Shown here: one piece after another, positions 8,088 through 32,509 of the stretch
How the letters are laid out: each line of letters starts with the position of its first letter
Position numbering within the stretch: position 1 is the first letter of the stretch
DNA from: Octopus bimaculoides
Taxonomy: Eukaryota
NCBI RefSeq assembly: GCF_001194135.2
Contig: NC_068990.1
Coordinates: 64,474,687 to 64,538,686 of the forward strand
DNA: 64,000 nucleotides
Direction: 5' to 3'
Made by a program: the position numbers and the translations under genes
The notes under the pieces: generated by a model
Databases searched by the model: none
What the model saw: the letters and a program-made list of their open reading frames with translations, nothing else
Told to the model about the DNA's origin: nothing

Positions 8088-8897
8088 ATATCCTTTGTCT
8101 GTAACTGATTTTGCAATCATTCTATCAGTATATAACACACACACATATGGTACTGAACATTTCATTTCTTTATTCTTTCAGCCTTTGTGTCATCTTTCTT
8201 ATGTAATACTTCCTACAGCTAGACCCATAATTTAATTGTATGTTTATATAGCCACATAATAAAAATGCACTTGTATACACAACTCTTTGCACATATTTGT
8301 CCAACAAAAAACCTTGCAAACTCACTTACTGTAGCACTGGAACTCTCTCTGACCTACATTCTATTAACTTTGCGTTATTTCCTCAATTTTCTCCCGCTTC
8401 CTATCTGATCTCTAGCCAACCATACTTTTTTTCTTATAAGCAGGATATGGCAACATAACTACCATCAACAGAACAGAAAAAGAAAAAAAAAAAACAGTCA
8501 CTACACTTATTAAGGAAACCAGTTTGCAAACTTACACTCTCCTAACTCAAGCACCACACAGCTGAAAGCCTCAAACTTGCAATAGAATAGAGACCTCACT
8601 TTTTTTCAAATGTTAGATCTCCTCATCAAGGCTGGAAATTACTTTATCTTTGAACAGCTAATATACTTTACAAAGTACATTTGTGACCTGTCTAAGATTA
8701 TTGCATATAGACCAGGGAAATTGATACACATTCACAGATATGACTCAGATCTCCTAAATAAGGAACTTATAAAGTTTATCAACAAGCCTTCACCCATTAT
8801 TACACTGTTGTGCTCCCTCTACTTTCTGTCCCTTTCAATGACTAGCAAGCTGTATGCCTCTCCCATCCAAGTTTACCTAATATATATATATATATAT

Positions 8898-9933
8898 TAG
8901 AAAGCACCTGCCCCTACTGATGACAAAGGGCCTCTCTCTCAGAGTGAAAGGTAGCTTGTATGATGCATGTGTGTGAACTGCCATGCTACATGGCAGTGAA
9001 ACATGGTCCTTGACTGCTGAAGACATGTGTAGGCTTGAAATAAATTAAGGTAGTATGATCTGCTGGATGTGTAATGTCAGTGTGCGCACACAGCAGAGTG
9101 TATGTGCCCTGAGAAAAATGCAGGACAAAAGAAGCATCAGATTTGGTGTGCAAGATAGACGATTGCGCTGGTATGGTCATGTGCTGCGTATGGATGAGGA
9201 GAGCTTTGAAGAAGTGGAAGGACCCATGAAAAAGGGAGACACAGGAAAATATAGGATGAGATGCTGAAGCATGATGATTGAACAATGGGCCTCACGGAGG
9301 CAATGACGAAAGACCAAGACCTCTGGAGATATGCTGTGATTGAGAAGACCTAGCAAGTAAAGGGAGATCACAGCTGTAGCCTACACCAGTGTCGCATAGC
9401 CAGCCCATTTAAAAAGTACCTTTGAATCATCGGGCGACATTCTGAGCTTCAGGAAATGTATTGAGTCAAGTAAAATCAAAATCAAATCACAATCAAATGG
9501 AAATTAAATTTGTGGCCGATGCAAGTACCACCTGGCTGGCTCCCATGCTGTTGGCACGCGATAAGCACCATTCATGCGTGGGTCATTACCAGTGCCGCAT
9601 GACTGGCTCCCCATGCTGGTGGTACTTAAAAATCACCATCCAAATGTGGTCTATGCCAGCCCCCACTCCGCTCCAATTGGCTCCTGTGCCAGTAGCACGT
9701 AAAAAAGCACCATCCAAACGTTGCCGATGCCAGTGCCGCCTGACTGCCTCCCATGCCAGTGGAATGTAAAAAGCCCCCACTACACTCTTGTAGTGGTTGG
9801 CCTTAGGAAGGGCATCCAGCTGTAGAAACATTCCCAGATCAGATTAGAGCCTGGTGCAGCCTCCTGGCTTGTCAGTCCCCAGTCAAACCGTCCGACCCAT
9901 GCCAGCATGGAAAACGGATGTTGAAAAATGATG

Positions 9934-9935
<2 letters not shown>
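8898..9935 (+). mobile_element. 5'-truncated RTE-clade LINE (C-terminal ORF remnant, 3' tail and (GAT)n)
   Basis: Degenerate LPLLMTKGLSLRVKGSLYDACV..MLHGSETW...CWMCNVSV...RRLRWYGHVLRMDE, typical of the RTE post-RT region. Ends ccatgccagcatggaaaacggatgtt...atgatgat. Confidence 0.85.
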
Positions 9936-9973
<38 letters not shown>

Positions 9974-10006
9974 TATACATATATATATTTGATATATATA
10001 TATATA

Positions 10007-10777
10007 NNNNNNNNNNNNNNNNNNNNNNNNNNNNNNNNNNNNNNNNNNNNNNNNNNNNNNNNNNNNNNNNNNNNNNNNNNNNNNNNNNNNNNNNNNNNNN
10101 NNNNNNNNNNNNNNNNNNNNNNNNNNNNNNNNNNNNNNNNNNNNNNNNNNNNNNNNNNNNNNNNNNNNNNNNNNNNNNNNNNNNNNNNNNNNNNNNNNNN
10201 NNNNNNNNNNNNNNNNNNNNNNNNNNNNNNNNNNNNNNNNNNNNNNNNNNNNNNNNNNNNNNNNNNNNNNNNNNNNNNNNNNNNNNNNNNNNNNNNNNNN
10301 NNNNNNNNNNNNNNNNNNNNNNNNNNNNNNNNNNNNNNNNNNNNNNNNNNNNNNNNNNNNNNNNNNNNNNNNNNNNNNNNNNNNNNNNNNNNNNNNNNNN
10401 NNNNNNNNNNNNNNNNNNNNNNNNNNNNNNNNNNNNNNNNNNNNNNNNNNNNNNNNNNNNNNNNNNNNNNNNNNNNNNNNNNNNNNNNNNNNNNNNNNNN
10501 NNNNNNNNNNNNNNNNNNNNNNNNNNNNNNNNNNNNNNNNNNNNNNNNNNNNNNNNNNNNNNNNNNNNNNNNNNNNNNNNNNNNNNNNNNNNNNNNNNNN
10601 NNNNNNNNNNNNNNNNNNNNNNNNNNNNNNNNNNNNNNNNNNNNNNNNNNNNNNNNNNNNNNNNNNNNNNNNNNNNNNNNNNNNNNNNNNNNNNNNNNNN
10701 NNNNNNNNNNNNNNNNNNNNNNNNNNNNNNNNNNNNNNNNNNNNNNNNNNNNNNNNNNNNNNNNNNNNNNNNNNNNN
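10007..10777. other. Assembly gap (N run)
   Basis: Flanked by (TA)n. The other gaps are 4781-4790, 11412-11626, 12845-12900, 15725-16673, 26488-26594 and 40710-40719. Most abut (TA)n or homopolymers. Confidence 0.99.
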
Positions 10778-10778
10778 T

Positions 10779-10820
<42 letters not shown>

Positions 10821-11337
10821 ATATATATTATATATATAAGCAAGGCGTAGTTATATAATATTTTCCGATACAAGCTATGTTTCCTGATTTGTCTCATAGT
10901 CTATATGGCACACAATTTCTCAGCAAAATTTACGCACTCACACACACACCTACTTTTAGCAACCATAGATTAGAAGAGATTATTTTTAATCCTTTGGTGA
11001 AGGTTAATCTGAAAATCTGAATCCTGAAAGATTAAATATGTGTGCTATAGAAAACCTTGTGAACTTTCTTGACAAATAGAAGGCATTTTTTATTTTAGTA
11101 ATTTCGTTATTGTTGGGTATTCTCTGGTTAGAACTGATGTCTTTGAGACATCTTTTGAAACCAATTCCATCGATCAGTGTTATCATAACCATCTTCCTTT
11201 CTTGTGTTTTGTCTCTTTTTGTGGTTTAGTTCACTAGGGATTAATTATGTTACACTTAATGATGTTATGTCATATTTATAGTGATTATCTTGCTGTTCTT
11301 ATCTGCTCATTCTTTGATCCTCATCAGAATATATATA

Positions 11338-11389
<52 letters not shown>

Positions 11390-11829
11390 AACTGGTTGAA
11401 ATTTTGCAGTCNNNNNNNNNNNNNNNNNNNNNNNNNNNNNNNNNNNNNNNNNNNNNNNNNNNNNNNNNNNNNNNNNNNNNNNNNNNNNNNNNNNNNNNNN
11501 NNNNNNNNNNNNNNNNNNNNNNNNNNNNNNNNNNNNNNNNNNNNNNNNNNNNNNNNNNNNNNNNNNNNNNNNNNNNNNNNNNNNNNNNNNNNNNNNNNNN
11601 NNNNNNNNNNNNNNNNNNNNNNNNNNATATATATATATATAAATCAAATAAGTGACAAATATGTCATGGTATTAATGCCTTGACATCCTTGTTACTTATT
11701 TGATTTTTATTCACCTTACTTCGAGCTGTGTGGATAATACCAGATTGACTTGGTTCCTCAACTTAAGTACCTTATTCAACTGAATCTTAATCATTTCTTT
11801 ATATATATACGCATACAGAAACACACACA

Positions 11830-12830
11830 CAGGATGCGATGGGTAAATTGTCGCCACTTTATATCTTTAATTTCGTGCATGCACATAGTTTGTTTTTGAT
11901 GGGTACCATCTGTGAGAAAAAAAAGCACCATGACGCAATTCACCCTGCCAGAAATTTGGAAATGACATGCTGTACTACTTGGCATTTGCACCGGAAGCTC
12001 CAATACAAACATTTCAGAGTGCTTTGGGTATCAATCTGAGAACAGTGCAGAGAAGTTAAGAAGATTTGGATGAGTCTAATGGTAATTACGAAGGTACAGC
12101 AGCTCGGAAAACTCACTCTGATCATTCTGATAAGAAAAGAACTGAATTTTTTGGTGAGATCCAGGCCACGATTGACAATGATCCCTCAAAATCAATCAGG
12201 TTCATCACCAGGGACATAAGTGCGTCTGAGTTTCTTATCAGACAGGTAGTGCATGAAGACATTCGGTATTCCTCAAGCAAGATGCCAATTTTCTTCCCAA
12301 GCCATTAAGGACAAGAGGAAAGACCACACTACAAAGGTTTTGAACAAACTCAAGCATCTCCTCCAACTAAACATGCTTTGGTTTTTCTCAGATGAGAGAA
12401 ATTTCTGCCAGAATCAGATGGTGAATATGCAGAACAACCGTTGGCTTGTCGTGTCCCCAAAACATGTACCGCGAGTGATAAAAATCAAACATCCAGTCAA
12501 CATCATGGTGTTTGGAGTGATCACTAGGGAGGGCAATGTTATGCCTCCCTTCATTGTCCCACATGGCCTCACACTTAACACAGTGGCCTACATCAAGTGC
12601 CTGGAGGAGGTAGTCCTTAAGCAAGGAGACCATTCAGAAGAGCTGCAGGAGATTGCGAAGTCATCTGGAGGCCGTGGTTGAAGCCAATGGCGATTTTATT
12701 GAACAAATTTATGCTTTAGTATTTCAATATATTTTTCATGTCATTTTGGTAAATATATCTGTTAAAATGACATGTCAGTGTTATTTTCATTTTTGCATAA
12801 TTTAGACAACAATTTCTTCACCACACCCTA
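11830..12830 (+). mobile_element. Internally deleted Tc1/mariner-superfamily element (maT/DD37D-like transposase remnant)
   Basis: Degenerate TIRs caggatgcgatgggtaaattgtcgcc and gacaacaatttcttcaccacacccta. Frameshifted transposase with WFFSDERNFCQNQMVNMQNNRWL...KHPVNIMVFGVITREGNVMPPF...AYIKCLEEVVL. The C-terminal catalytic half is missing, so the subfamily is inferred. Confidence 0.75.
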
Positions 12831-13519
12831 TATATGTATATATANNNNNNNNNNNNNNNNNNNNNNNNNNNNNNNNNNNNNNNNNNNNNNNNNNNNNNNN
12901 TATATATATATATATATATATCATTGACAGCATTTAATGTCCCTTTTCCATGCTGGTATGGGTTGGGAAGTTTAACAGGAACTGGCCACACCAGGTTCCA
13001 TAGTCTGTTTGGTTTGGTTTCTACAGTTGCATGCTCTTCCTAATGCTAACCACTTTACAGAGAGTAGTGGATGCTTTTTATGTGGTACCATCACCAGTGA
13101 CACACACACACACATAGATATATAAAGTATGGGCATTGCAACTGAGAATGACTTGGTGGGCTTTCATTAATTGCATTAGGGGAACAGGTAGTCACAACCA
13201 GACACAGACATCCCCTTGGCTCTCCTACTTTTGACTCAGCAAATAAAGAGAGCACTGCACTAGTCTAGGCTGATACTTTATTGATCTCAAAAAAGGATTA
13301 AATACAAAGTTGGTCTTGGCAGGATTTGAAAATCAAGTGCTATTAGCTGGTGCAAATATTGCAATGCTCCAATTTCTCCACCAGTCAATCACACACACAT
13401 ACATATACACACGTCATGAGAGAAGACCTAAGCTTTGGCACCCAGTCACAGAAGATGGAAAAAACTGGTTTACAACATAACTGCATCCCTCTAACTCCAT
13501 CAAGAGTCAACAAAGAAGG

Positions 13520-13963
13520 GAATGCATGGCTGTCTGGTAAGAAGCTTGCTTCCTAACCACATGGTGCTGGGTTCAGTCCCAATGTTTGGCACCTTGGGCA
13601 AGTGTCTTCTACTATAACCTCAGGCCAACAAAAGCCTTGTAAGTGGATTTGGTAGATGGAAACTGAAAGATGCCCATTGTATATATGTGTGTGTTTGTGT
13701 GTATCTGTGTGTGTGTGTCTTTGTGTGTATCTGTATGTGTTTATTATATTGTGTCTGTGTTGTCCCTCATCATCGCTTGATGACCAGTGTTCGTTTGTTT
13801 ACATCCCCGTAATGTAGTAGTTTGGCAGAAAGACCCAATGAGTAAGTACTAGACTTAAAAGTAAGTCCTGGAGTGGAATTATCTGACAAAAAACACTTCA
13901 AGGCGATGCTCCAGCATGGTCACAATGAAATGACTGAAACAAGTAAAAGAAAAGAGTAAAAGA
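13520..13963 (+). mobile_element. tRNA-derived SINE (ccttgggcaagtgtcttctactata core family)
   Basis: Head tggctgtctggtaagaagcttgc...gggttcagtccc with A/B-box-like motifs, internal (TG)n, and tail ctccagcatgg...tgactgaaacaagtaaaaga. Homologous copies at about 21205-21597 (+), 33275-33430 (+), 42893-43015 (-), 47818-47970 (-) and 55985-56345 (+). Confidence 0.75.
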
Positions 13964-13967
13964 ATAT

Positions 13968-15549
13968 AAGAATAGAGTGGAGTAAGTTCAAAGAGCGATT
14001 ACCTCTGGTGGCAACAAAAGGATTCTCTCTCAGAGTGAAAGGTAGACTGTATGATGCTTGTGTGTGAACAGCTATATTCCATGGTAGTAAGACATGGGCT
14101 CTGAATGTAGAAGACATGCATAGGCTGGAGAGAAATGAAGGCAGTATGCTCTGTTGGATGTGCAACATCAGTGTACATGTACAACAAAGTGCAAATGTAT
14201 TGAAAGAAAAGTTGGGCATAAGAGGAATCAAATGTGGCATAGATGAGAGAAGACTATGTTGGTTTGGACATGGGATGCATATGAATGAGGACATCTGCAT
14301 AAAGAAGTTCTGATCACTGAAAGTGGATGGTACTCGCAGAAGAGGGAGTCCCAGAAGACATGGGATGAAGTGGTAAGGACCAATCTCAGGATGGTGGGTC
14401 TCACAGAGGAAATGACAATGGACCGAGATATCTAATGATATGAGGTTCTTGAGAAGATCCACCCATGTCAGCGAAACTGAGTTCTAGAAGCACTGTGTAT
14501 TCCTTCCATATGTAACAAGAAAGCTTTTCACACACCCTACTCCAACAAACCAAACTATATCTCTACAACTCTTCTCTTTTTCACATTTCTTCTTTCATGG
14601 ACTATGCTTACCTCCCCAATCCTGTTGTCTTGGCTTTGTTTCACTGTATTATTGCTCTCTGATAGCCCCCAACCTGTGTGTTCCATCCATCCGTAACAAG
14701 AAAACTTTTCACAAACCCTACCCCAACAAACCAAACTACATCACTGCATCTTCACATTTCTTCCTTCATGCACTATGCTTACCTCTCACTCCTCAGTCCT
14801 GTCCTCATAACCCTGTTTCTCTGTATCATTACTATCTGGTAGCCCCCCCCCCTCCACTTTATATACCCAGGTTTTCACCACTCCCTGCACTCCCTTCCCC
14901 GCTCTCTAATCATGCTTCAAACCTCAAGAGTATGCCCTGACACTTGCCACCATCTATATCTCTCTCTTCCTTTACTATCCCATGTGTATATTCGATTATC
15001 CCATGTGTATGCTGATTCCCATCCCTTGTGAGTACACCCGGCACTTTGCCTCAGTCTCTATCCTGCTGTCTCTTACTCTTTCTTTCCTACTGCTATTTCC
15101 TCAGGTTGGGTATCCATGTATCTCCTTTATGGCAGCATACCTGTTTCTGTCCTCATTCCTGATATCCCTCTCTCTTACCTTCTACCTCTCCTACAATAGC
15201 CTCTCTCTGTTTTACTATAACCTTTCATCATCTGACACAAGATCACTTCTTTCAGTGTCTCCCTCTCCTCTCAAAAGGTTTTTTATCTTGCAAGTTACTT
15301 GGTGACCCTGTCAGTGCAGGTGCCACTTAAAATGCATCCAGTCCACACTGTAAAGTGGATGACATTTGAAAGGGCATCCAACTGTAAAAACCTTGCCAAA
15401 ACTGACCTCGGCTGTGTTTGTGCCATGTAATAAGCACTCAGTCCGCTCTGTTGGGTGGTTGGTGTTAGGAAGGGCATCCAGCTGTAAAAATCCTATCATC
15501 CCACCCATACCAACATGGAAGGCGGACGTTAAACAATGATGATGATGAT
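13968..15549 (+). mobile_element. 5'-truncated RTE LINE with long pyrimidine-rich 3' UTR and (GAT)n tail
   Basis: WSKFKERLPLVATKGFSLRVKGRLYDACV...GSMLCWMCNISV...RRLCWFGHGMHMNED remnant. Internal duplication of about 180 bp (about 14500-14680 and 14680-14850). Tail ends aaacaatgatgatgatgat. Confidence 0.85.
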
Positions 15550-17696
15550 ATATATATATATATATATATATGTATAAGCAACTTATGGAATCTAATGAAG
15601 TACCATGTAATTGTTTATCTTTGACAATTCTGTATGTTGCCTATTATTTGAAGTGGTTAGCCAAATCTGGATTATTTCAGAGTGCTAATAAGGCATCTGC
15701 CTGGACTCCAAATCCCCAGCTCTTNNNNNNNNNNNNNNNNNNNNNNNNNNNNNNNNNNNNNNNNNNNNNNNNNNNNNNNNNNNNNNNNNNNNNNNNNNNN
15801 NNNNNNNNNNNNNNNNNNNNNNNNNNNNNNNNNNNNNNNNNNNNNNNNNNNNNNNNNNNNNNNNNNNNNNNNNNNNNNNNNNNNNNNNNNNNNNNNNNNN
15901 NNNNNNNNNNNNNNNNNNNNNNNNNNNNNNNNNNNNNNNNNNNNNNNNNNNNNNNNNNNNNNNNNNNNNNNNNNNNNNNNNNNNNNNNNNNNNNNNNNNN
16001 NNNNNNNNNNNNNNNNNNNNNNNNNNNNNNNNNNNNNNNNNNNNNNNNNNNNNNNNNNNNNNNNNNNNNNNNNNNNNNNNNNNNNNNNNNNNNNNNNNNN
16101 NNNNNNNNNNNNNNNNNNNNNNNNNNNNNNNNNNNNNNNNNNNNNNNNNNNNNNNNNNNNNNNNNNNNNNNNNNNNNNNNNNNNNNNNNNNNNNNNNNNN
16201 NNNNNNNNNNNNNNNNNNNNNNNNNNNNNNNNNNNNNNNNNNNNNNNNNNNNNNNNNNNNNNNNNNNNNNNNNNNNNNNNNNNNNNNNNNNNNNNNNNNN
16301 NNNNNNNNNNNNNNNNNNNNNNNNNNNNNNNNNNNNNNNNNNNNNNNNNNNNNNNNNNNNNNNNNNNNNNNNNNNNNNNNNNNNNNNNNNNNNNNNNNNN
16401 NNNNNNNNNNNNNNNNNNNNNNNNNNNNNNNNNNNNNNNNNNNNNNNNNNNNNNNNNNNNNNNNNNNNNNNNNNNNNNNNNNNNNNNNNNNNNNNNNNNN
16501 NNNNNNNNNNNNNNNNNNNNNNNNNNNNNNNNNNNNNNNNNNNNNNNNNNNNNNNNNNNNNNNNNNNNNNNNNNNNNNNNNNNNNNNNNNNNNNNNNNNN
16601 NNNNNNNNNNNNNNNNNNNNNNNNNNNNNNNNNNNNNNNNNNNNNNNNNNNNNNNNNNNNNNNNNNNNNNNNNTTTTTTTTTTTTTTTTTTTTTTATTTA
16701 TTTGAAAAATGATTGGTAGAGTGAGTCACTGGTAAACTTTCATTGGCATTGTAGCTGTTTTAATGTAGTTTCTTAAGCCGGAAGTTTAATATTACTACCA
16801 AATCCCTACGGAATCAATGCAATGTCCCTTGACTTTCAAGCAATCAGACTCTTTAATTCTTTTTGGCATTAGACAACTCTGTATTAGAGATTCTATTAAG
16901 GACATAGTGTTTTTAAATGTTGTTGTTACTGGTGTTGCTGTTGTTGTTATTGTAGTTGTTGTTCGTTGTAATGCAATTCATGCTGGTGTTGGTGGAAGTG
17001 GTAAGACAGTTACTGTTAATGGTGGTGGTTGTGATAATACAGTACTGCGGTTGGTGGTGGTTGCAGTAAAATAGTTTTGTTGAGGTGATGGTTGTGGTGG
17101 TATACTACAGTATTGTTGAGGTGTTGGTACATTACTGTTGATGATGGTGGTAGTGCAGCAACTATTGATGGTGGTAGCAGAGGTGCAGCAGCTGTTGCTG
17201 CTGGTGATGCTGCTTTTGTTATTACTCTTGTTGCCTCGTTTTTTTTTCTTTTCTCTTATATAATTTTTGGTTTTTTTTTCTCTTTTCTAATTTCCTTCTA
17301 TTTATTTCCCTCTAAATCATTTCTTTATTTCCTTCAAATCATTTCTTTCTTTATTTCTCTCTATTCTTTTTTTCATACCTCTTTGCCCTCCATTTTCTCA
17401 GATTCCCATTATTTTTTTCATCCATTTATTCTATATTTTATAATTTGAAATTGACTCAATCTTTTCTTTACTTGCTGTAATTTTTACTGTTTTAACTTAG
17501 GTTTCATTTGCATATCTTGGCACATCTCATGCATTTGATGCACACTGCACCAGGCTTTGTGACATGAAGTGCATATTTACAGCAGTTGAATACAGTGATG
17601 CGTTTCAATCACTGAAGGTCTGTGTGACATTTCATAGAAGCAGTTTGAAGATTGTGTAACATGTAATGTACATGTTATATAACTGAATACATATAT

Positions 17697-20135
17697 ATCA
17701 TCATCATCATCATCATTATTTAACATCCATCTTCCATGCAAACTTGGGTAGAACAGTTCACAGAAGCTGATCGGGAGGGAAAACTACTCTATGCTACTGT
17801 GTCTATTTTGGCAGGGTTTTTACAGCTGGATGCCCTTCCAAATACCAACTACTTTACAGTGGGGAGTGGATGCTTTTTATGTGGCACCATCACCAAGTAA
17901 CTCGCAAGACAAGGAATTATGAGAGGAGCAGGGGCATTTGAGGAGGGGAACTTGTGTCAGATGATGAAAAGTTATTGGGTGACAAAGAGATAGAGAGGCA
18001 GAAACAGGTGTCTTGTTATAACGGAGGTGGCATTGGAGGAGGTGATCCAGTATCAAATGATGAAAGGTTAAAGTGTGACAGAGATAGGAAGGCAGAAATA
18101 GGTGTCTTGCTATAGAGGAGGTACATGGTTATCAAGTGAGAGAGAGCAACCAAGAATGAAAGTAGAAATAGGTGTGCTGCTGTAAAGGAGATACATGGCT
18201 ACCCAGTCAGAGGGGAGAGCAAGGCAAAGAGAGAGAGAGAGAGAGAGTAGGAAACAGCAAAAGTGTAAGAGAGAGCAGGAGAGTGGTGGTGAAGTGCCAG
18301 GATATACTCACATGTAGCAAATATTAGAGCATAGATGTGATGGTACAATAAAGAAAAGCAAGATACGAAGGTCGTAATATACACGGTCAAGTGTTGCCAA
18401 GAAGGTGCAAATAGGGTGTGGGGATTGCAGTGACTGACAAAAACCTGGGTCAAGGGCAGGAAAGGGGATTGGAAGACAGTCATAGTTTATGAAGAGGAAA
18501 TGTGAGAAAGATGCTGTTTAGAAGAGAAGATGTAATTTGGTTTCTTGAAGTAGGTGTGTGAAAAGTTTGTTGTTACATGTGGGTGGGACACAACTCTTCT
18601 AGCACTCAGTTTTGCTGACATGGGTGGGTCTTTTCTAGAACCTCATATCATCAAACATCTCGGTCCATTGTCATTTCCTTTGTGAGCTCCAGCATTTTGA
18701 TCAGTCCTCACCACTTCATTCCATGTCTTCCTGGATCTCCCCCTTCTACAGGTACCATCCACTTTCAGTGATCGGCACTTCTTTATACAGCTGTCTTCAC
18801 ACATACGCATCACATGTCCAAACCAACGCATGCTCTTCTCCTGCATGCCACCTTGAATCCCTCTTACACCTGATTTTTCTCTCAACACAGTTGAGCTTTG
18901 TTAGTTTTGCACACTGCTGTTGCAAATCCAACGGAGCATACTACCTTCATTCCTCTCCAGTCTGTGCATGTCCTCTGCAGTCCTAGCCCATATCTCACTT
19001 CCATGTAATATAGCTGTTCTCACACAGGCATCATACAATCTGCCTTTCACTCTGCAATAAAGTCCTCTTATGTCCAACAGAGGTAGTAGCTATTTGAACT
19101 TCTTCCACCCTATTCCTATTCTTGAAACAATACTTTCAGAGCATCCACCACCTTTATTAATTTGGTCACCTAGATAGCAGAAACTTACTGCTACCTCAAG
19201 AGAGCCTCTTGGGCATTCGAGAAAGTTTAAGTCCCTCATGCCGTTAGTACTTATTGTTTAAGTGTATCTGCCACACATTGAAAGCGGCCCTATCTGTTAA
19301 CCTACTTATGATTCCACTGCATCTCTTATGCATCCATAGCTTACACTTGGTGCAGCAAATGGAATTGCATCCCTCTCCTTTCCTACATATTGAGCAGGGC
19401 CATTTACCTGATGGAAGGAGGGTTTTATTTGTTTTCTTGCTAACAACTTTAGTCTTTAAATTAACTTTAAGGCCCTTTGATTTCAGGTTTTGTTTCCAAA
19501 CCCTGAACTTCTCTTCCAATTCTGCTTCAGATTCTTCAATAAGAGCAAGATCATCAGCATATAGTAGTTCCCATGGGCATTGAGTTTTGAATTCCTCTGT
19601 TATGGCCTGGAGAAGTATGATGAATAAGAGTAGACTAAGAACTGATCCCTGATGAACCCCAACTTGTACACTAAATTCATCACTGTATTCAAAGCCGACT
19701 CTCACCTTACTGACAGCATCATTGTACATGGCTTGAATGGCTCTAACAAGCTACTGCTCTATTCCTAGCTTCCTTAGAGACCACCAGATTAGAGAGTGGA
19801 GAACCCTGTCAAAAGCTTTCTCCAAGTTAATGAAAGCTAAGTACAATGGTTTACTTTTGGCCAAATACTTTTTTTGCAGTTGTCTCACTATGAAGATGGC
19901 ATCTGTGGTACTTCTTCCTGAAACAATAACCAAACTGCATCTCATGTAGCTTAATTCTACCCCTAATCAGTTGAGATATAATTCTCTCTGTAATTTTCAT
20001 GACTGGCTTGATACCTTTGTAGTTACCTCTGTAACAGCTTGATACCTATATAGTTATTTCTATCTAAAGCATCACCTTTGCCCTTGTAGCAGCTAACTAT
20101 AATACTACACAGATGCTGTGTGATACATGTTTACT
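17697..20135 (-). mobile_element. Decayed RTE LINE covering most of the RT domain, PHD-like finger, 3' UTR and tail
   Basis: Minus-strand remnants IVSCYKGKGDALDRNNY, GRSTTDAIFIVRQLQKKY..PLYLAFINLEKAFDRV, GVHQGSVLSLLLF, LLYADDLALI and LRWFGHVMRM-like segments. (ATC)n at 17697-17716 is the reverse-complement tail. Confidence 0.9.
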
Positions 20136-20359: not shown

Positions 20360-23238
20360 TACATAAAGACTGAGGTATGTAGTATATACTTTAAAGCACA
20401 AGCATGCAGTATATACTTTATGGTACAGGATAAGGACCTTGTGCTATAAAGTATGTGCTGCATAAGTATTGGTTGACAGTTAGAGTATATTGCATGCAGT
20501 AATCTGCAGCAAGTTACAGAATGTGAGCTACATATTGCAAGACTGTGTGAAATGCAACCATTTGACAGGCATAAGTCATAATGCAACAGCTGTGTGACAT
20601 GTGTAAAGTAAGATGTCAAGTTATTGATAAAACGTCATCTGGTTTGTTTATTTGATATTTACTTTTCTATGGAGGCAGAAAATTGACAGAATTGTGTTAA
20701 AGTGTTTGGATAGAATGCTTTGTTGTATATGTCTTGATGCACTATACTCTCAGTTCAAATCCCACCAAGACTGACTTTGTTTTTCAACTTTGCAGGGATG
20801 GTAAAAAGTACCAATCTAGATGAGGTGGGGGTGGATTGTTGGAACTGTTTGAGCCTTGAATGAGATGTTTTGTCTTATTTGTTTCAGCACTTACCATTGT
20901 GACAGCAACACCCACAACGACACTGGAGCCATACCATACTGACTCTGGAGTGGCATGCATGCATGTGCACATACACATACGCACATACACAACTGTAGGT
21001 AGATATACTAATGGTTAACTCTTACTGACACAGATCCCTATACTCTTTTCTCTATTAACATAAAAAATGGGGCTTCTTTCATAACTGCATATTTGTTTAT
21101 GAATCTTTGAAACTATGTACCTTTAAAATTAATTTATTGTTGTTCATTTAGACTCAGGTCATCTAATTGAAAATACCTAAGAGTTATGTGTTGTTCTTGT
21201 AATTTATAGTTTGTGTGTAAGAAGTTTACTTCCCAGCCACATGGTTCCAGGTTCAATCCTACAGTGTAGCACCTTGGGCAAGTGTCTTCTACTATAACCT
21301 TGGACCGACCAAAGCCTTGAGAGTGGATTTGGTCAATGAGAACAGAAAGAAGCCCATCATGTGTGTGTGTGTGTGTGTATTTGTCTGTTTGTCTGTGTTT
21401 GTTCCCCACCACCACTTGTCAGTGGGTGTTGATGTGATTATGTCCCTGTAATTTAGCAGTTTGGCATAAGAGGCTGATAGAATGTGTACCAGGCTTTAAA
21501 AAAAAGTACCCGGTTCAGTTCATTTAACTAAAATTCTAAAAGGTGGTGCCCCAGCATGGCCAAATTTTAATGACTGAAATAAATAAAAGATAAAAGATAC
21601 TTTAAACTAAGGAGGATGGACAATATACCTCAAGTATATGAGTTCAAAGTCTTACTAAAAGTATCGTGCTCCTAAGCAAAACTTCCTCTGATTTGGTTCA
21701 CTGAAAATTATATGCGATTTATTATGATGTGGATGGCCTTTGTTATAGCTTATCTCACCAGGTCACATAACTGGTTGATAACTAATAGTTTGAATGTTTT
21801 GTTTAACAATGCACATTAGAAAGAAATTATTTGGTTGTTTGAGTGCAAAAGTGACTTGAGGTATGTGTGCGCATGCATACTGGACTGACATGGTCACTGT
21901 TTTGGTAAATTATAACCTCTTGTCACCTCCTTATCATTCTCATGGTTTTGTACTCTTCTTCTTTTCATGTCAAGTCTATTGTACTCATGCCTTTACTCTT
22001 ATCTAAAGTAAATACTACAGATATATAAATGTGGGTTTTGTTATTTATGGTATAAATACAGAGCTATCTTTTATCTTCTGATATTTTCATATCTCTAAAC
22101 TGACAATACTGTCATGACATGAGAACATTTCACAGGAATACCTTCTGCATAATAAATATATAGTTAAGCATATTTTCATGTAACATACTGAATCAACAAA
22201 TGCTTAAACTCTTAATAGTACAGCTACCTTTCTAACTAATGAAGAGAGAAATCCTTGGTTTCTTGCCAAGAAAGGCTAGGAAGACAATTCAGAAATTCAA
22301 AGTAACTGAAAATTGAATGGGGGAGCATAAAGTGGGGAGTAAATCTGCCCCTTGCATTGCTCCATTAGCCCAGGTAGCAATGTTCAATGGTATTCCAGCT
22401 GTGACTATGCTATGTTCAGAAACAAATGTATCTAGAACAACATTTGTCATTTGAATAAGATTTAGCTGTTATTTTTAGCATATTGAGCAAGTTAACTACT
22501 CAGTGTCTCGATCATTCTAAGATCTAAGTATGTGTGAGACTATGCTTCACTAAGGAGCTCTTGCCAAAAGATTAGATTTACTCCCTATTACATACCCATT
22601 CTTCATTAAATTTGGAACATTTGGAATTTCAGTTATTTTCATTGTCTTTCTCGACAAGAAGTTAATGAGTTTTCTCTTAAGTTGGTAGGTAGGAGAAATA
22701 TTCATTTCAAACTTTGACACAAGGTCAGCAATTTTGGGGCAAGGGGTAAGTTAATTACAGTGACCCCTGTGCTCAACTGGTACTTATTTTATCAACCCCA
22801 AAAAGGATGAAAGGCAAAGTTAATCTCAGCGGAATTTGAATTCAGAACATAAAAATGGTTGAAATGCCACTAAGCATTTTTCCCAGCATGCTAATGATTC
22901 TGCCTAGTGCATGAAATATTAACAGTTAAAACGTGCTTTGGCTCACTACATTACATTAGCCCACACTTGATTATATATTATTTATCCAGAAGGAATTCCA
23001 GTGATATCATCCCATGTCATGATGAGTACTGGAGTATTGTAGTTTAGAGAGATGAAAATCTCAAACAATAAAAACAGCTTGTTTTCTGTACCATAAATAA
23101 CAAAATCCATATTAAACAAATACATTGATGATGTGTTTCTTTTTAAAAAGAATAATAATGACATAGAAGAGAACAAAACCATGACAATGATATAAGATGA
23201 TGAAGAAAGGTTATAATTTACCAAAACATTGGCTATAG

Positions 23239-23273
<35 letters not shown>

Positions 23274-25001
23274 ACTCATTCACTTTTGCACTGAAGTAAA
23301 CTACTGATTTCTTTCTAATGTGCATTACCAAAAACAATATACAGACTACTTAAAAGGTTATCAACCAGTTGTATGGTTTGGTTAGAAAGATTATGACAAA
23401 AGGCCACATTGTAACAAATGCAAATGGCATCTAATTTTCAGCACTTTGACTTGGAATCCCTGAAAAGTATCATCCATAATTAGGAGCATTTATTACACAC
23501 ACACACACAACAATGTGTCTCACTTATACTCTCACATAGACTTGTAAAAATGCTAGTAGAGTTTATGTAAGAATATATCAGGTTTTATGACTAATTTCAG
23601 ACTTCCTATATAGTAGGTATGTCAAATCCATCGCTAAAAATTCAGTCAAACTAAAAATAGGTTGGCTTCTCTTAGGCTATTTACAAATGTCTGCTAACAG
23701 ACAGCACTATTTAAAGTGTTGTTTTGAATATTTTTCTTCATTTTCATTTTTTTTTTTCACTCATGAAGCTTGCTGCAGCTAAATACTTCTGACACAGTTT
23801 GTTTACTAAAGAAGACATAGAATGTCTACAACTGATGTGAAATTACAAATTTTTGGAGATTCTGATGAAGCTCAACAAAAATATGTTCAAATGTTTCTAA
23901 AGAATGACTTGAAGTCAATTGGTGGAGAAAAATTTCAAGAGGAAAGTAATATATGTGTGTCTCAAATGAAGGAGTATGCTTCTCGATCAGCTAATGATAA
24001 TGGTGATACAGTTATTATGTGGTAGTTTACCAGATCTATATCATATTCTCAATTTTTGGGTGTTTCTGTTCAGTAGATTTAGTCACTATGTTTCTTTTTC
24101 AGATGTTTGTTTTCATCTGTTCCCTATGTGAATGAAGTTCAGATTTGATAACATTCCCACAAGAAACAAGTTTTTAGTTTGGTAGTATAAAATGGAGCTG
24201 AAGAATATTTTTGAGGTGTTTTGAACTGACACTTGGTTATCAAAGACTTTCATTTGCCAGAGGTTATTAGGGGAGGAGAAAAATGTGGAAATGTGGTAGT
24301 TGGTCAGAGACAGGTGTGGAGAGTAATATTGTGGAGGTAGATTCGCAGCCTCGTTTGTACAGTTTCTGGAGAGTTATCTGTCAGCCATGGTCAGATATCG
24401 TCATGGAAAAAAATTGATCTGTCTCGATTTAATAATGCTGGATGTAAATATTGCTTTCTTTGTGCATTTTATTGGTTTCCTGGTATTGTTTTTGCTGTGA
24501 TGGTTTTTGTCAGAGTTCAAGAAATGCTAAACAATGATTGCACATGCAAACCACCAAACAGTAACCATAGACTTTATTTGATGGAACATCAGACTGGAAA
24601 AGTGTTTTGGTACTTCACCTCAGTCCATTTATTGCATGAAATACCATTGATTGTTGCACAGAATCTATTTTTCACTACATGTCACATTGTAACATGTTAT
24701 TGTTATTCAAAAGAAGTGCAGACGAAATAGTTGCAGTTTTCTCCTCCCCATTTGTTGAATGGCAATGTTGAGTTGCTTTACATGAGTCTTCAGTAGTGGC
24801 CTTCAGTTGGCTGTTTATAACTGCAGCTGGTTGCCTGTGACATTCCTCATCACCAAGGTTCTTATCTCCATTACATAATTTTAGGAACCTATGTTAAACT
24901 GTTTGTGATGGCCCCCTTGGCTAAATGTTTGACTAGTACTGTGAGCAGTTTCTACTACTTGGCATTCCATTTTGAATTTATGTACAATAGAATTGCTTGA
25001 A

Positions 25002-25007
<6 letters not shown>

Positions 25008-25057
<50 letters not shown>
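25008..25057. repeat. Poly-T tract (50 nt)
   Basis: Directly visible. Confidence 0.95.
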
Positions 25058-25059
<2 letters not shown>

Positions 25060-27539
25060 ATTTTTAATTTCAACAGCTTAAAATATACCAGAGGAAACAG
25101 ATAATGCAAAACCATTAGAATAGAATAAAATAGGCACTTCAAAATAATATATTACTTGAACATAGGCAAATAAAAATTTATTCTAAAATAAGCATCAATG
25201 TTTAACAAAAAGCACAATTATTTTTACACCAACTTTATGACAATGTATGTATATATTTGTGTGTGTGTGTGTGTGTGTGTGCACATGTACATACATGCGT
25301 GCGTCATTGGTTGAATTGTAAGGAAGTTTCCATAATTGGACAGCATCACTTCATTGCACAGAGAGGCTGTTGGCACTGTGAGCTCGCAAAGAGGGAGAAA
25401 ATTTTAACAGAAGCCCTGGATGTTTAGATGAGTCGTGATTTTTCTTAGAAACAATGTTTAAGCCTTGTATGATAATTATACTTTAAACAGTTTTTTTAAA
25501 TGTCTTTCTTGGTGTTATGTCACTGAGCAGGAAAAGTGACTGCTGTGGCAAGGTCCAATATAATTTTATTACAGAAGTTCTTATCTTCTTTAGTAAGGTC
25601 CATAAAACAATTACCATAAGATGTACTGGCCCTTGCAGCACCTACGATGAGGCATATACTGATGGAAAGCTATAAGAAAATATAGATAAGAAACTACTGT
25701 ACAAAATCTGCTTTTGGTTAATCAAAATAATCTGCAATTTCTTTTCAAAGCATAAGATATGAGTTTGTAAAACCATTCCATGAAAGAGGATACTGAGCTA
25801 CGAAAGGTTGAGAGCTGCTGTGCTATACCATAGGGAAGTTGATGTAGATTTGCAGTGAGCCAAAAGGGGGAGGTTGCTTTGCAGCTTGACCTACTACAAA
25901 TAACAATCCAACATCCCTCAAATCATACCATACTGCCCAGAGAACAAAAAATAGACTCATTGAATAATGTGAATATTTTTTCGTATTTGAAAATATGTTG
26001 TATTTGAAAATAAGATGCAATGGTCACATTTTGACCAGCTTTTGGTCAAAATGGTCAGAGGAGGCCTGTGGTTTAATGTGCTAAAGCATACTGAGATATT
26101 AATGAGGGTTGTGATGGAAAAGAATTAATGTTCTAACATCTGGTCAGTAACCACATTATATAGCCTCAGGGTTAAAAAAAAAGAAGAAATTTGTATGTGT
26201 GTGTGTGTATATATTGTATATGTGTTTGTAGGACATTGTTTGCTTATATGTACATATGTGTTTCTTAATAATCTCTACATTCTCATGCGTTATTAATGCA
26301 CTAACAGTGAGAAGCAACTAGGTGTAAAAAAAAAAATGTACTATTTGCTTGATAATATTGATGTAATGTCTTTTTGTCTTTTTGTCTTCTTTTTACAAAG
26401 CTCCACACACATACATACTTAGGTAACCACAAAGTCTTATATTTATAGTGAGGGAAATAAAAAGTTGTAAAGCTGCCCCCCCCCCCCNNNNNNNNNNNNN
26501 NNNNNNNNNNNNNNNNNNNNNNNNNNNNNNNNNNNNNNNNNNNNNNNNNNNNNNNNNNNNNNNNNNNNNNNNNNNNNNNNNNNNNNNNNNNNNNCCCCCC
26601 CATACACACACACACACACACACACATACAAATTCACTTGTACTATGTACTGTAATGTCAAAAAACATTGAAGGTTCACTATAACATATAGCAAATGATG
26701 AATTAATTCTGCATCTGAAAACTTATTTACTCATGCTGTAACAAAATTTAGGAATTACTAGTGTGTATAGAACAATTGAAAGAATACGATTTTTAGTTCA
26801 GTTTTTCAAGTTTTTTTTTTCTTGTATTTCGTTGATGTTTTTGTTGCTGTTAAGCTCATAACATTGTAATTGTCTGAGATAGAAGAAGCCAAAGACTGAC
26901 AGTTGTTTACAAGTTGCAACAAGAGGACATGATTCTCAGCCTTTGTTGACCAGAAAGAAATACTGAATACATTTTCATATAATATCTAGTAAACTTTGAG
27001 AAATGTTTTCCACTGGGTGCATTATTTCATTTTGCTGTGTTTTTCTTTTTCTACTTCATGGAATTTGGAAATGTGTGTCATATGAACTTTGGTTTCTTCT
27101 AGTAACACACACAGAATCAATCATTTAAAAATGTGCCTTATTCCTCCAGATAAATTAATAGTTCTGGTGGAAAGCAACAAAAGTTAAGAAGACTCTGTAG
27201 TAAGAGAGAGAGTAGATGGGGCTGAATGGTTTTTTCAGTGAAGACTAGTTTGTGTATTAAGTGGTAACAAATAATTATGTAAATAGGGAGTAAAAGATGT
27301 AGAACTTGATATGCAGCAGTGTTTTATACAACTAGGTATAAAATCACAGTTTGTATCATTATCTCTGTGCCAACAGACAACTTTGAGGTAAAATTTACAC
27401 ATCCGTGTGTGTTTTTTCTTTCTTCTATTTCTGGTTTCTTCATTATTAGAGGTCTTTCTTGTCCTGGTGTTTGTTTTTATTTTTATTTTGAAGTTTTCTT
27501 TAGTTGTTCTTGGGTGTTTCGCTTTTGTTTTTCTTTCTT

Positions 27540-28826
27540 CTTGTCAGTTGAAAAGTACATAGGCTGTCCAAGACATTCATGGAATGTGACCAAATGAGGT
27601 TTAGTTTTCAGCATAGCCCCCCCCCCCTCTGCAGTTCACACACTTCTTACATCAGTGTTGCAGTGCTTGGATCCCATTGGTGAAGAAGCTTTCATCTTGT
27701 TGGTCAAAAAAGTCATCATCAGCATATATGACATCATTATCATTGCAATATTGCTTCTCAACCAAGTTTTTTTTTTTTTCATGTTGTAGAACAGATGATA
27801 GTCAGGTGGGACCAAATCATGAGAATAGGGAGGTTAAGCAACCAGTTCAAAGCCACAGTCACACACACCAGTCATTGAAACCAAAAGCTTCTGTGCTGGA
27901 TCATTGTCCTCATGAAACAAGACCCCTTTCATCAGTTTTCCTGGGCACTTGGTCTTAATAGCCTTTGTAAGTGCCTCAGCAAGTTGGCATAGTACTCTCC
28001 ATTGATGGTGTGGCCCTTTTGAAAATAGTCAATAAACACAAAGCCTTTTACATTCCAGAAAACTGAGGCTGTCACCTTCCCTGCAGATGAAACAACCCTG
28101 GCCTTCTTTGGAGCAGGTGAAGAGGGGTGTTTCTACTGCATTGATTGTCTCTTTGTCTTTGCATCTGGCTCAAAGTGATGAATCCAACACACATCCTAGG
28201 TTAGGAAGCCAGCTATATCTGCCTCAGACAATGTCAGATTCTGTTGTGATGTGAGCAGCCTTGTGCACTTTTGATCAGCTGTCAGACAACATGACACCCA
28301 CCAAGCAAAAGAAACCTTCATCATGCCAAAATTGCTGTGCAGAATATTCTTAACTTTCTCACAGGTTATGCTAATAGTATTGGCTATTTGATTAATAGTC
28401 TGTCAGCCATCATATGGTGAACATGGTCAGTGGTTTCCTCAGCGGTGACAGTTGCATGACATCCTGACCTTGGGTCATCTTCAAGAGTCTCCCTTCCCCT
28501 CCTAAATTCAATTGCCCACTTTTACATTGTTGATAAAGTTGGAACATCATCCCCTAATGTAGCAACCATGTTAGCATGAATGTCCTAGGGGCTAAACCTT
28601 TTTACTGCAGGTATTCAAGAACATGACATTCGCAAATTTTGTCCATTTTCAAGAGAAATTGCTACTAGTTACTTTTGAAGTGTTCTTTGAGCAGTTAGAT
28701 GACAATTTATTTCAAAAGGAACAATGCAGTTATTAACAAGAAGAGCTGAAATTAATGCATGCAAGATTTCACAGCTCTAGCATTACTACTTCATAGTCGG
28801 TCTATGAACTTTTCAGCACACCCTCG
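27540..28826 (-). mobile_element. Decayed mariner element, near full length
   Basis: Minus-strand ATG at 28646 (MDK..). Remnants LEDDPRSG, KKARVVSSAGKVTASVFWNVKGFVFIDYFQKGHTINGEYYANLLRHL and DFFDQQDESFFTNGIQALQH. TIR cgagggtgtgctgaaaagttc at the 28826 end and a degenerate copy near 27540-27570. Confidence 0.85.
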
Positions 28827-31308
28827 TGTGTGTTTGTGTGTGTGTGTGCATGCATGAGTGCAGTGTAGGTGCATACCACATCCCCATGCTTTCTCGCGTA
28901 CCCTAGCCCCACACCCTGAGCCTCACCTGTATTTTGTTCCATCATTTGCTTCAAATGCCTCTATCTTCACCCACCCAATCCAAACCTCTGTATTACCTCG
29001 CTTATCCTCACCCCCCACCCACCCCAAGAACATATCCTGACACATCTTCACCACCATCTCTCTCACTATTGCTCTCTCTAACTTACTCTCTGACTCACTT
29101 GCTCTCTTTATATTACTCTCTAACTCACCCTCTTTTCCTCTTCAATTGGAGTATTCACATATCTACTCTACAGCAAGACACTTATTCCTGCCCCTCTATA
29201 CTTTTAATCTCTCATCAACTAGCACAAAGCCACCGCCCCATCAATACTCCTGTCCACTCCCAACTGAGGGAGTTTTTGTCCTACAAGTTATTTGGCGAGC
29301 CTATTGGTGTTGGTGCCATGTAATAAGTACTGGTGCTGGTGTCACATAAAAAGCACCCAGTACATTCTGTAAAGAGATTGGTGTTAGAAAGGAATTCCAG
29401 TCATAGAAAATATGCCAAAACAGACTATAGAGCCCAGTGCAGATGACAGCCTTACCAGCTCCTGCCAAACTTTCCAACCCATGTCAGCATGGACACAGAC
29501 ATGAATTGATGATGATGTCTTTAGATTATTGAGGCTCAATGAGTTGAAAGAAAATTATTTGTAAAATATGTAAAACTTGCTTTTTAGAGTGATCATCCAA
29601 AGGAAGAGGACAAGACTCTTTTTGATACACAAAGTAAAGTTACCATTGTCAGTCAGGATTGCACTGTAAGAAGAGATTCTATGCAGTTGGTGAGACAGTA
29701 GACTATTGGGGTTTTTATTGGTAACAAGATTCTTTGTTGAATATTGACGGATAACCAAGCTATCCAAGGTGGAGATTACCATTAGACAAGGATTATATCC
29801 ATGATTTGAGGCCCATGAAACAGCATGTAACATGGTTTTAGAACGAACTCTATCAAAATTGTTTATTTTTATTTGAATTTAGGGTTATTTGGTATTATCT
29901 AGGTATCATATAGGCTGTGTTTTTAAACCTAAACATGGTGTGTATGTGTATACACATGCATATGTATGTGTGTGTAGAGAGAGAGAGGGTAGTTTTTAGA
30001 TCTAAATATAGTGAAAGTTGTGGTCAGTATTGAAATGTAGTGAATAAATGTTTACTCATGCTGTAAATTTACAAATAAGAATAGCACATGTAGTGCAGTG
30101 AATTTTGATGTAAATCATACAAACATACAATCTCTCTTTCTCTCTCAAAATACTTTGGAAGTACTATAGGCTGTGAACTGTATAATATTGACTTGTTCTG
30201 TTTGTAAGGTTTTTGCTAAACCATCTGTATAAGGTTTGTAATGTGCCTTGATACAATTACTATCTAAATAAACTTTGGGAATATCATTTTTGGCAACTTG
30301 ATATTTTGTATCTCTTTTGTCCTTCCCTTTCTTGTTTGTATGGCAGTGTTGATGTTTGCCATTGAATAGTGCTTTCAGTTTGAAGAAATCTATGTTGTTA
30401 TCGCAAACAATTGCATCAGAGAGACTATATTCAAAGTCTCTCTCAAGTGTGGGTGTATATTTGTATCATTGTGTGAATGATTGTGCAATGTTATTCCTTA
30501 ATGACAGTTTATTGTTGATTGTTGTGGTAGTTGTTTCCAAGAATAATCCTCGTGGGTGTGCTGCTTGTTATTACTAAATTTAGTGATAGGCAGCAGTTGT
30601 GGAAAATTGCTTTCAACAAAGGTTTATCTGTAAATATCATAGAATCAGCATCACACTAGAAATGGTCCTATAATATTAGATCACAATAGCTTTTTCACAT
30701 ATATAATCCTTTACTAGATAATTCGATCTGTTCTATCTTTGCCTATAATTTTCTGACTGACTACATTGAAATGATTGTCTGCTTCAAAAGTATGCAATAT
30801 ATTGTATGAAACCCAACGTTTCTTCAATTATACATCTCAAATTCAATTGGTTGTTTTACAAGACATTGAAAATAAACTAAGAAAATAAAATAAAAAAAGA
30901 TTTTTATTATATATGCCAGCATCTGTGTATAAATACATACATTAATTTATATATATATATACACACACATATATATAGGATATACTTTTTGTAATGAGAT
31001 AAAAAACCAAGGCCGTGTATAATATAGAACATTTATAAATCGAATGTCTTACAGCTGTTTCCAGGATATTTATTATATCCCTTCATTGGAGACGGTGTGA
31101 GAGGATGATTAAACAATAGTTAGTTTAGTTAAGATAGGAAATATTGAGTGAATGTAGGGATATTGTATTTGTAAATCCATTGTTTAGGTAGAATGGTATA
31201 CATATAAGATTCCAATACCTTGTGAGTAAAATCCAATAGTCTTTAAGATTGGTCATTGCATTTGTAAATATATACACACACACACACATATATATGTATA
31301 TATACACA

Positions 31309-32148
31309 AAGAGGTATCCAAAAGTAACTAGAAACATTCTCTGTGGGACAAGCCCATTGTAGTTTGCACTTCCACTGCTAGAAGCCCCTTTATGCAACCC
31401 TCAGGCTTCAGTCTGCCGACCAGTGGCATCGGGTGAAGTCATACTGCTACGTGGTGCATCATCGTTTTGCAGTGCTTCTTCCCAGTTCATCAATTTTCGA
31501 GACAGCTGAAATGAAGGAACAGCGTGCTTCTGTGGAATTCTGTTTTCTGCTGGAGAAAATGGAGACCGAAATAGTTGTCAGGCTTCAAACAGATTACAAG
31601 GACACTGCCATGAACGAAACACAAATTTGTGAGTGGTTTTCACTTGTTGCTTGAAGACCAACCATGTTCAGGGTCACCAGTGACCTCCTGAATGAATGAA
31701 AACATCATGAAAATTCATGAACTGATCTTGGAGGACTGAACAATTAACAAACTTGTTGATATGATTGGTGTGTCCTGGAGCTCCTGCCAATGAATTTTGA
31801 GTGAGGAATTGTGAATGAAAATAGTTGCAGCAAAATTTGTGCCTTGCTTGTTCATAGAAGATCAAAATCAGTCACGATTGAATGCACTTTCGAAGATCAT
31901 CACTGGTGATGAAAGCTGGTGCTATGGAATTTGCAGATGTGGAAGAGGTGAAGGAAAAAAACGATGGTGGCATTAAAAGGCATCACTTCTCAAAATCTTG
32001 AGCACTGCTTCAAACAGTGGAAAATGCATCTGGGCCGAAGCATTGCTTCAAATAGAGAATACTTTGAAGGCAATAAAAATGTAAACATGTAAAACTAAGT
32101 GAATAAAATAACATTGCAAAATACCAGTTTCTTTCGGGTACCCTCTCT
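31309..32148 (+). mobile_element. Internally deleted mariner element (irritans/Hsmar2-like)
   Basis: MKEQRASVEFCFLLEKMETEIVVRLQTDYKDTAMNETQICEWFS, KFVP and IITGDESWCYG, joined directly to the C-terminal FADVEEVKEKT..LKGIT..CFKQWK. Degenerate TIRs gaggtatccaaaagtaact and ccagtttctttcgggtaccctc. Confidence 0.8.
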
Positions 32149-32509
32149 TATATATATTCACACACACACACTGCTTCCTTTTTCAGCTGTCCACTTATGT
32201 TTGTTGGTATTTCAGAGCTTCCATTAGTTCCCTCTGTTAGGTCATCTGCCTAATTGTCAGTCTGTCTGTCCTTCTGGCCATTACTTGCTTCATCAGTATG
32301 CTAGTTAATCTGTCTGAACATCTGTCTGTTTGCCTATCTATCTTCAGTTCATCTACTTGTCTATCTTCAGTCCATCTGTCCATTTGCCTGTTTATTCATT
32401 AAACCATTATTTCTCCTCCACTTATATCACTTGTTTGTCTGATAGCATCTCTTTTCCTCCTAATGCACATCTACTGTTCAATTTGTTATTTACTTTAACC
32501 TATCTCCAA

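Follow-up and report, generated by a model that had tools for sequence, protein, structure and literature searches.

At the syntaxin-6 locus of Octopus bimaculoides the question arises how an intron of some 24 kb, which begins with AT and ends with AA, is removed from a transcript in which every other intron of the exon 2–8 model has GT-AG termini. The locus lies in a stretch of 64,000 nucleotides (contig NC_068990.1, positions 64,474,687 to 64,538,686 of the forward strand), here called the window and numbered from its first base, and the interval in question, 8088–32509, separates exons 2 and 3. With a probability of roughly 0.9, we assign it as the second intron of Octopus syntaxin-6, a U12-dependent intron of the A-type and AT-AA subtype, orthologous to intron 2 of human STX6 and intron 1 of Drosophila Syx6, and its sequence suggests that it would be removed by the minor spliceosome (U11, U12, U4atac and U6atac). 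This is in agreement with an earlier note on this DNA, which had proposed a U12-type AT-AA intron between these exons with the donor at 8088, the branch site 11 nt before the intron end and the junction CCAA|GT; coordinates and sequences were recovered as claimed, and the proposal is borne out by the anatomy of the intron, the match to RefSeq, the junction in a transcript contig (L001) and seven orthologous loci.

Exon 2 ends in ...GAAACGATAG at 8087 and exon 3 opens at 32510 with GTATTGTGGAG; when the two are joined, they read ...DLEETI-G-IVEKNPKKF..., and the 88-aa product matches the Pfam family STX6_10_61_N with E = 9.1e-29. Exons 4–8 were located by tblastn, with a human STX6 sequence and orthologues from databases as probes. 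The spliced exons 2–8 correspond, at 100% identity, to residues 13–253 of the RefSeq proteins XP_014784935.1 and XP_029640847.1, i.e., syntaxin-6 isoform X1 of O. bimaculoides and of O. sinensis, which are identical to each other. The window therefore holds the Octopus STX6 locus, and the junction 8087^32510 is already contained in public annotation.

The 5′ end of the intron at 8088 reads ATATCCTTTG, and the donor within it agrees with the U12 consensus at every position (Table 1). The octamer RTATCCTT is not significant by itself, with seven copies in the window against 4.8 expected; the significance of the donor is its position, which is the exact base at which N|[AG]TATCCT is found in 89 independent read-through ORFs (open reading frames) of STX6/STX10 of other animals. 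These ORFs were obtained from the 120 best STX6/STX10 matches to the exon 2–3 peptide, 89 of which are single-exon ORFs on genomic contigs that read through the end of exon 2 at the identical codon and phase, continuing with NIL (52), DIL (30), SIL (3), YIL (3) or NIP (1), which is equivalent to N|ATATCC (N|GTATCC for SIL). Four of the seven octamers in the window, perfect copies of ATATCCTT at 1577–1818, were considered as splice sites and rejected, being part of a tandem repeat at 1577–1826 with a period of 24/36 nt (TGATATTCCAACCAATATCCTTAT); this repeat is a decoy for U12 donor scans that go by motif only.

At the other end of the intron, the 45 nt upstream of exon 3 end in ...TTATTTACTTTAACCTATCTCCAA, with CTCCAA as the final intron bases at 32509. 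The putative branch site TACTTTAAC matches TTCCTTRAY imperfectly, within the range seen in the orthologues, and its pairing with the U12 snRNA sequence GUAAGGAA would include a single mismatch and a single G.U wobble. Branch sites were scored by a simple identity/pairing score of our own devising. On this simple pairing score, about 0.1% of the 9-mers in the window reach the level of TACTTTAAC, and the chance of an equally good 9-mer with its branch A 10–15 nt from a given junction is about 0.006–0.009. The pyrimidine tract, described as weak in the earlier note, is not especially so, with 14 pyrimidines in the last 20 intron bases. The donor, the branch site, its distance from the 3′ end, the termini and the positional orthology are thus all of the U12 type, and AT-AA is itself a documented variant of U12-type introns (PMC1635337, PMC1557818, PMC10639083). 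The termini of this class are AT-AC or GT-AG, with AT-AA, AT-AG and AT-AT as variants. Inside the intron, 21 branch-like 9-mers score equally well or higher; for the best of these, TTCCTTAAT at 30494, no AC or AG was seen 10–15 nt past the branch A, and nothing resembling syntaxin was encoded from exon 2 to exon 3 as judged by homology searches covering the window. A better internal U12 acceptor and an exon hidden in the N gaps (considered below) had both been named in advance as grounds for abandoning the proposal.

Use of the junction is supported indirectly by transcripts and protein models of related species. The Logan transcript contig L001 (SRR3401912; 1,884 nt) codes for a syntaxin-6 of 253 aa, in which all but two residues agree with the Octopus protein; across exons 2–3 its nucleotide identity with the window is about 96%, with 10 of 265 nt mismatched, whereas in the 3′ UTR (untranslated region) it is 77%, and its source is therefore a related octopod. 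It reads ...GAGACGATAG|GTATTGTTGAA... at the junction, i.e., ACGATAG|GTATTGT. Because the first and the last intron base are both A and the exon ends on either side are G and G, ATAGGTATT cannot be reached by sliding the junction, and judged from the flanking sequence of the window an mRNA with this string can only correspond to 8087^32510. Furthermore, the Argonauta hians protein reads ETIGIVEKNP at the junction, and squid-like transcripts at 92–93% identity read ETISIVEKNP. We infer that the O. bimaculoides mRNA uses exactly 8087^32510.

The AA junction had been held to be the only in-frame solution, which our data do not support: GT at 8101 and AG at 32509–32510 are also in frame. Accordingly, the intron could instead be a GT-AG intron of the major spliceosome at 8101–32510, as in the O. 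vulgaris model CAI9729035.1 (P0244), which uses that junction, and the U12-like motifs would then be relics; both dinucleotides are present, and the pyrimidine content of the last 20 intron bases would suit such an acceptor. However, in the donor TCT|GTAACT agreement with the consensus is limited to positions +1 to +4 and +6, G being absent at −1 and +5, and AAG serves as acceptor. DILC, the additional four residues, is the translated U12 donor, as in the 89 other ORFs, and at this place every well-modelled orthologue has just one residue (G, S, A or D), the only longer models being those of Lottia (P0172) and Batillaria (P0160), which retain U12-intron sequence. In addition, the L001 transcript and the RefSeq and Argonauta proteins read ETIGIVE, not the GT-AG product, and the nested GT is not present in the other seven loci. 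A major-spliceosome intron is highly improbable on this evidence; the nested GT-AG junction may be used as a minor cryptic isoform.

The O. vulgaris model reads ETIDILCL..., with four spurious residues, and differs also at its C-terminus; the JGI model of Lottia reads ETVDILYSFLNLLLR... and that of Batillaria ETxNILVALPVQISSTVL..., both with intron sequence retained. Apparently, all three are mis-annotated because GT-AG junctions were forced.

Some of the evidence weighs against the assignment as a U12-dependent AT-AA intron. The nested GT-AG pair is in frame and sits at the same intron ends; the branch site is imperfect, and since about 21 equal or better 9-mers occur within the 24-kb intron, it is not distinctive alone. 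Dependence on U11, U12 and U6atac is deduced from sequence and orthology, and support for 8087^32510 is indirect, coming from the RefSeq models of two Octopus species and the transcript of another octopod.

The terminal dinucleotides were compared across eight lophotrochozoan loci, i.e., the window and seven retrieved STX6 loci (L002–L008). In all eight the intron starts with ATATCC, the branch A lies 9–11 nt from its end, and the flanking exons measure exactly 170 and 95 nt, the lengths that the earlier note had given for the human exons; the 170-nt exon is bounded by an upstream AG in the seven other loci. The introns of Octopus (TACTTTAAC...CAA|GT), Aplysia californica (TTCTTTGAC...CAA|GT), Pomacea canaliculata (TTCTTTAAC...CAA|GT) and Littorina saxatilis (ATCTTTAAC...CAA|GT) are AT-AA, and those of Physella (AACCTTAAC...AAC|GC), Lottia (TTCCTTAAC...TAC|GT), Crassostrea virginica (TGCCTTAAC...CAC|GA) and Lingula (TTCCTTAAT...TAC|GA) are AT-AC. 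The AA end, previously thought peculiar to this copy, is therefore no octopus oddity and is shared by several molluscs, and all four AT-AA copies have the junction CAA|GTATTGT in common. For the three AT-AA gastropods, the NCBI source lists the protein as syntaxin-6 or syntaxin-6-like, and the readings ETVGIVE in Aplysia and ETVSIVE in Pomacea fit AT-AA junctions. The earlier note's statement that STX6 orthologues carry a U12 intron at this position holds for these seven loci as well as for human STX6 and Drosophila Syx6, which are listed as having orthologous U12 introns (human intron 2; Drosophila intron 1, AT-AC), with a change to GT-AG noted in fish (Lin et al. 2010, PMC2831892).

Five fish-like STX6 ORFs (P0011, P0012, P0013, P0016 and P0022) read in frame through a U12 intron of 72–90 nt and have Ser at the acceptor codon, and these copies would end in A, because the A|AT donor and the mature AGY Ser codon require it. 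Given the published GT-AG switch, fish may carry several STX6 intron states or paralogues.

With a single base deciding the subtype, in a gap-rich draft assembly, it has to be considered that AC is the true end, and that AA stems from a mistake in sequencing or assembly or represents a rare allele. The acceptor, however, lies in non-repetitive sequence 5.9 kb from the nearest gap, and the identical CAA|GTATTGT is present in three gastropod assemblies. The O. vulgaris model CAI9729035.1, mis-annotated as it seems to be, bears on the same point: it is obtainable only with a GT at the equivalent of 8101 and an AG at the equivalent of 32509–32510, and in the genome record of a second Octopus species the U12 intron should therefore also end in A. 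Together with the terminal A implied by Ser in the five fish-like ORFs, this makes an error or rare allele a very remote explanation.

The AA end might also be genuine in the genome and altered in the pre-mRNA, the last intron A being edited to inosine by ADAR so that the spliceosome would see AT-AG. Cephalopods edit RNA heavily, editing by rat ADAR2 reportedly creates a 3′ splice site, and such an edit would leave no trace in the mature mRNA; nothing direct speaks in favour of it. Against it stand the AA ends of the gastropod orthologues, from animals not known for heavy recoding, and the AT-AA U12 introns known among RefSeq-annotated human, mouse and Arabidopsis introns (PMC1557818), so that editing is scarcely credible as the explanation of this end.

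The preferred reading, an AT-AA intron of the minor class, is in line with what has been reported for such introns. The U12DB consensus is RTATCCTTT for the donor and TTCCTTRAY for the branch site, the two being recognised together by U11 and U12, and the last acceptor base tolerates substitution, especially in AT introns, AT-AA being among the observed forms (PMC1635337). RefSeq-annotated AT-AA introns number three in human, four in mouse and one in Arabidopsis, and the MSH3 intron is AT-AA in human but has AT-AC termini in the mouse (Sheth et al. 2006, PMC1557818). Among non-canonical minor introns of animals and plants alike, AT-AA is the most frequent type, and minor introns are relatively enriched in molluscs, with Octopus sinensis included in that survey (Larue and Roy, PMC10639083). 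A-type (AT-AN) introns are regarded as a single mechanistic class, which is CENATAC-dependent (PMC8280824).

In the mechanism that we propose, the U11/U12 di-snRNP (small nuclear ribonucleoprotein) would bind donor and branch site jointly, ATATCCTTT being contacted by U11 and later by U6atac, and TACTTTAAC by U12; the 3′ cleavage site would be fixed mainly by its short distance of 11 nt to the branch adenosine. Substitution would be tolerated at the final position of A-type introns, with A standing in for C. Molluscs have either AC or AA at the STX6 position, and the Octopus copy would have been lengthened by the accumulation of repeats within a gene of about 150 kb.

Terminal base and branch site are associated in the eight species. 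All four AT-AA copies have a CTTTRAC branch site and none of the four AT-AC copies does, all of which have CCTTAAY (Fisher p = 0.029, uncorrected for phylogeny); the change from C to U in CTTTRAC leaves a G.U wobble with U12. That the two change together at the STX6 intron through functional coupling, rather than by shared ancestry or chance, we consider unlikely, and the fish-like ORF P0016, which seems to pair a terminal A with the canonical C at that branch-site position, counts against a general rule. If true, coupling would mean that in minor introns of the A-type the strength of U12:branch-site pairing and the nucleotide at the 3′ terminus compensate for each other, and the nested in-frame GT-AG pair of Octopus could be a read-out of weakened minor splicing. 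The association is only a mildly new point.

The five flagged gaps all lie within the intron, the nearest to the donor at a distance of 1.9 kb, and their borders are (AT)n, poly-T or poly-C. Simple repeats are the usual break points of short-read assemblies. As the gaps are of estimated length, exons 2 and 3 could in principle have been misjoined across them, or a coding exon could be hidden in the N runs, and the 24-kb intron would then be an artefact. The location of the gaps in simple repeats argues against this, as do the collinear order and strand of the exons through exon 8 and the comparable extent of the gene in the genome records of three octopods (O. bimaculoides, O. sinensis and Argonauta), where spans of 150.5, 151.9 and 163.8 kb are recorded. 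No coding exon is hidden in the gaps, because exons 2 and 3 abut without a missing residue in the alignments to all orthologues, and an artefactual intron can be all but dismissed. The gaps make only the length uncertain; the reading frame and the splice sites are unaffected.

The intron is 14–45 times longer than its counterparts in the seven other species (544–1772 nt), and the earlier note had described it as grown to about 24 kb of transposon debris. The length stands, at 24,422 nt in the assembly, and the sequence contains one fragment with reverse transcriptase (RT) and PHD finger similarity as well as several repeat families; transposon debris is a fair description of the whole, though one only partly borne out. 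The interspersed families (80–390 nt, 70–88% identity, both orientations) look SINE- or MITE-like (short interspersed or miniature inverted-repeat elements) and are common to intron 2 and other introns of the gene, and intron 2 holds in addition microsatellites and a perfect T50 run at 25008–25057. An RT-like stretch (WELHYTDDLVLIAES) related to the ORF of the retrotransposon remnant is located in a downstream intron, at about 50855–51284 (+), and a 207-nt inverted match at 70% (I4) connects the two. An Rfam scan of the whole window gave no family at threshold, and no intronic snoRNA or similar. The length of the intron fits a gene of 150 kb. Our data lend no support to the suggestion that it is a strong test of long-range U11/U12 pairing: the lengths of minor and major introns correlate across species (Larue and Roy, PMC10639083), and in octopods the gene extends over about 150 kb.

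Table 1 Features of the syntaxin-6 locus, in window coordinates
Feature	Position	Strand	Remarks
Exon 2, syntaxin-6	7918..8087	+	170 nt; TTGCAG directly upstream; EVQKAV...DLEETI and first base (G) of split Gly codon
Intron 2, phase 1	8088..32509	+	24,422 nt in the assembly, five gaps accounting for 2,098 N; termini AT-AA
U12-type 5′ splice site ATATCCTTT	8088..8096	+	9/9 relative to consensus RTATCCTTT (PMC1635337)
GT of cryptic U2-type donor TCT|GTAACT	8101..8102	+	with AG 32509-32510 in frame, +4 aa
Assembly gap	10007..10777	.	771 N, (AT)n on flanks
Assembly gap	11412-11626	.	inside intron 2
Assembly gap	12845-12900	.	inside intron 2
Assembly gap	15725-16673	.	inside intron 2
Retrotransposon remnant	19244..19729	-	161-aa ORF; RVT_1 E = 1.3e-10, PHD finger E = 5.8e-5
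Assembly gap	26488-26594	.	inside intron 2
U12-type branch site TACTTTAAC (putative)	32491..32499	+	7/9 relative to TTCCTTAAC; presumed branch A 32498, 11 nt from last intron base
3′ terminal dinucleotide AA	32508..32509	+	last A and exon base G also make AG
Exon 3, syntaxin-6	32510..32604	+	95 nt; encodes (G)IVEKNPKKFKITDEELRERRGFIEKTKQVVR; GTAAGT directly downstream
Exon 4	38975-39037	+	tblastn
Exon 5	44314-44433	+	tblastn
Exon 6	46748-46854	+	tblastn
Exon 7	48610-48704	+	tblastn
Exon 8	52763-52839	+	tblastn; stop codon included
Interspersed repeat copies	8875-9422, 13537-14354, 15305-15492, 18588-19119, 29324-29425, 47807-47966, 49222-49511, 51528-51722, 52098-52199	both orientations	

A six-frame search of the window for the exon 1 peptide MPLEDPFFVVRD was negative, and a DPFMVVR match at 7007 was rejected as exon 1, being without a start codon; a pattern search of the window for the alternative first exon of RefSeq isoform X2 (MIIC...) gave no match. 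With a gene of about 150 kb, exon 1 is therefore placed upstream of the window, and intron 1 at about 100 kb, because exons 2–8 cover 45 kb. Exact database look-up of the two ORFs overlapping exons 2 and 3 returned no match, and a homologue search queried with the exon-3 ORF returned no candidates. A (CT)53 microsatellite is located at 7208–7314, 600 nt upstream of exon 2, and a poly-T tract of about 30 nt (52871–52900) follows right after the stop codon in the 3′ UTR.

The feature is ordinary: both the U12 intron to which it is orthologous and the terminal variant that it shows are well known, and its junction is already implied by RefSeq proteins. Its practical consequence is that gene predictors restricted to GT-AG introns mis-model syntaxin-6, and that recognition of the U12 AT-AA intron gives the correct protein. 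It adds one more case of AC/AA switching, at a minor intron that fly, human and the examined lophotrochozoans have in common, and shows that such an intron can reach about 24 kb as the rest of a cephalopod gene lengthens with it; the current understanding of minor splicing is changed by neither the switching nor the growth.

The closest known system is the pair formed by human STX6 intron 2 and intron 1 of Drosophila Syx6 (CG7736) (PMC2831892), with which the Octopus intron shares the gene family, the phase and the position, one base into the codon that comes after ETI, as well as an ATATCC donor and a U12 branch site near the 3′ end. The flanking protein segments equal those of human STX6 in length (56 and 32 aa), and align without gaps. 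For fly and mammals, AT-AC termini have been published; the Octopus intron differs from them by its AA end. In this respect it resembles the AT-AA introns of RASGRP4 and FLJ21106 (human/mouse) and of human MSH3 (PMC1557818), which likewise combine an ATATCC A-type donor with a substituted last base, and the switch between AC and AA in human and mouse MSH3 parallels that among molluscs at STX6. Those introns are in different genes, however, and at STX6 the switch affects a single ancient intron, as seen in lophotrochozoans (at least four lineages) and, by implication, in some fish-like sequences. Compared with the introns of Aplysia, Pomacea and Littorina (L002, L007 and L008), the Octopus intron has the same AT-AA termini, the same CAA|GTATTGT junction and the same CTTTRAC-type branch site rather than CCTTAAC, but the gastropod introns are gap-free and measure 616–1743 nt, and the Octopus branch site has one extra mismatch, with TAC in place of the TTC or ATC of the three gastropods.

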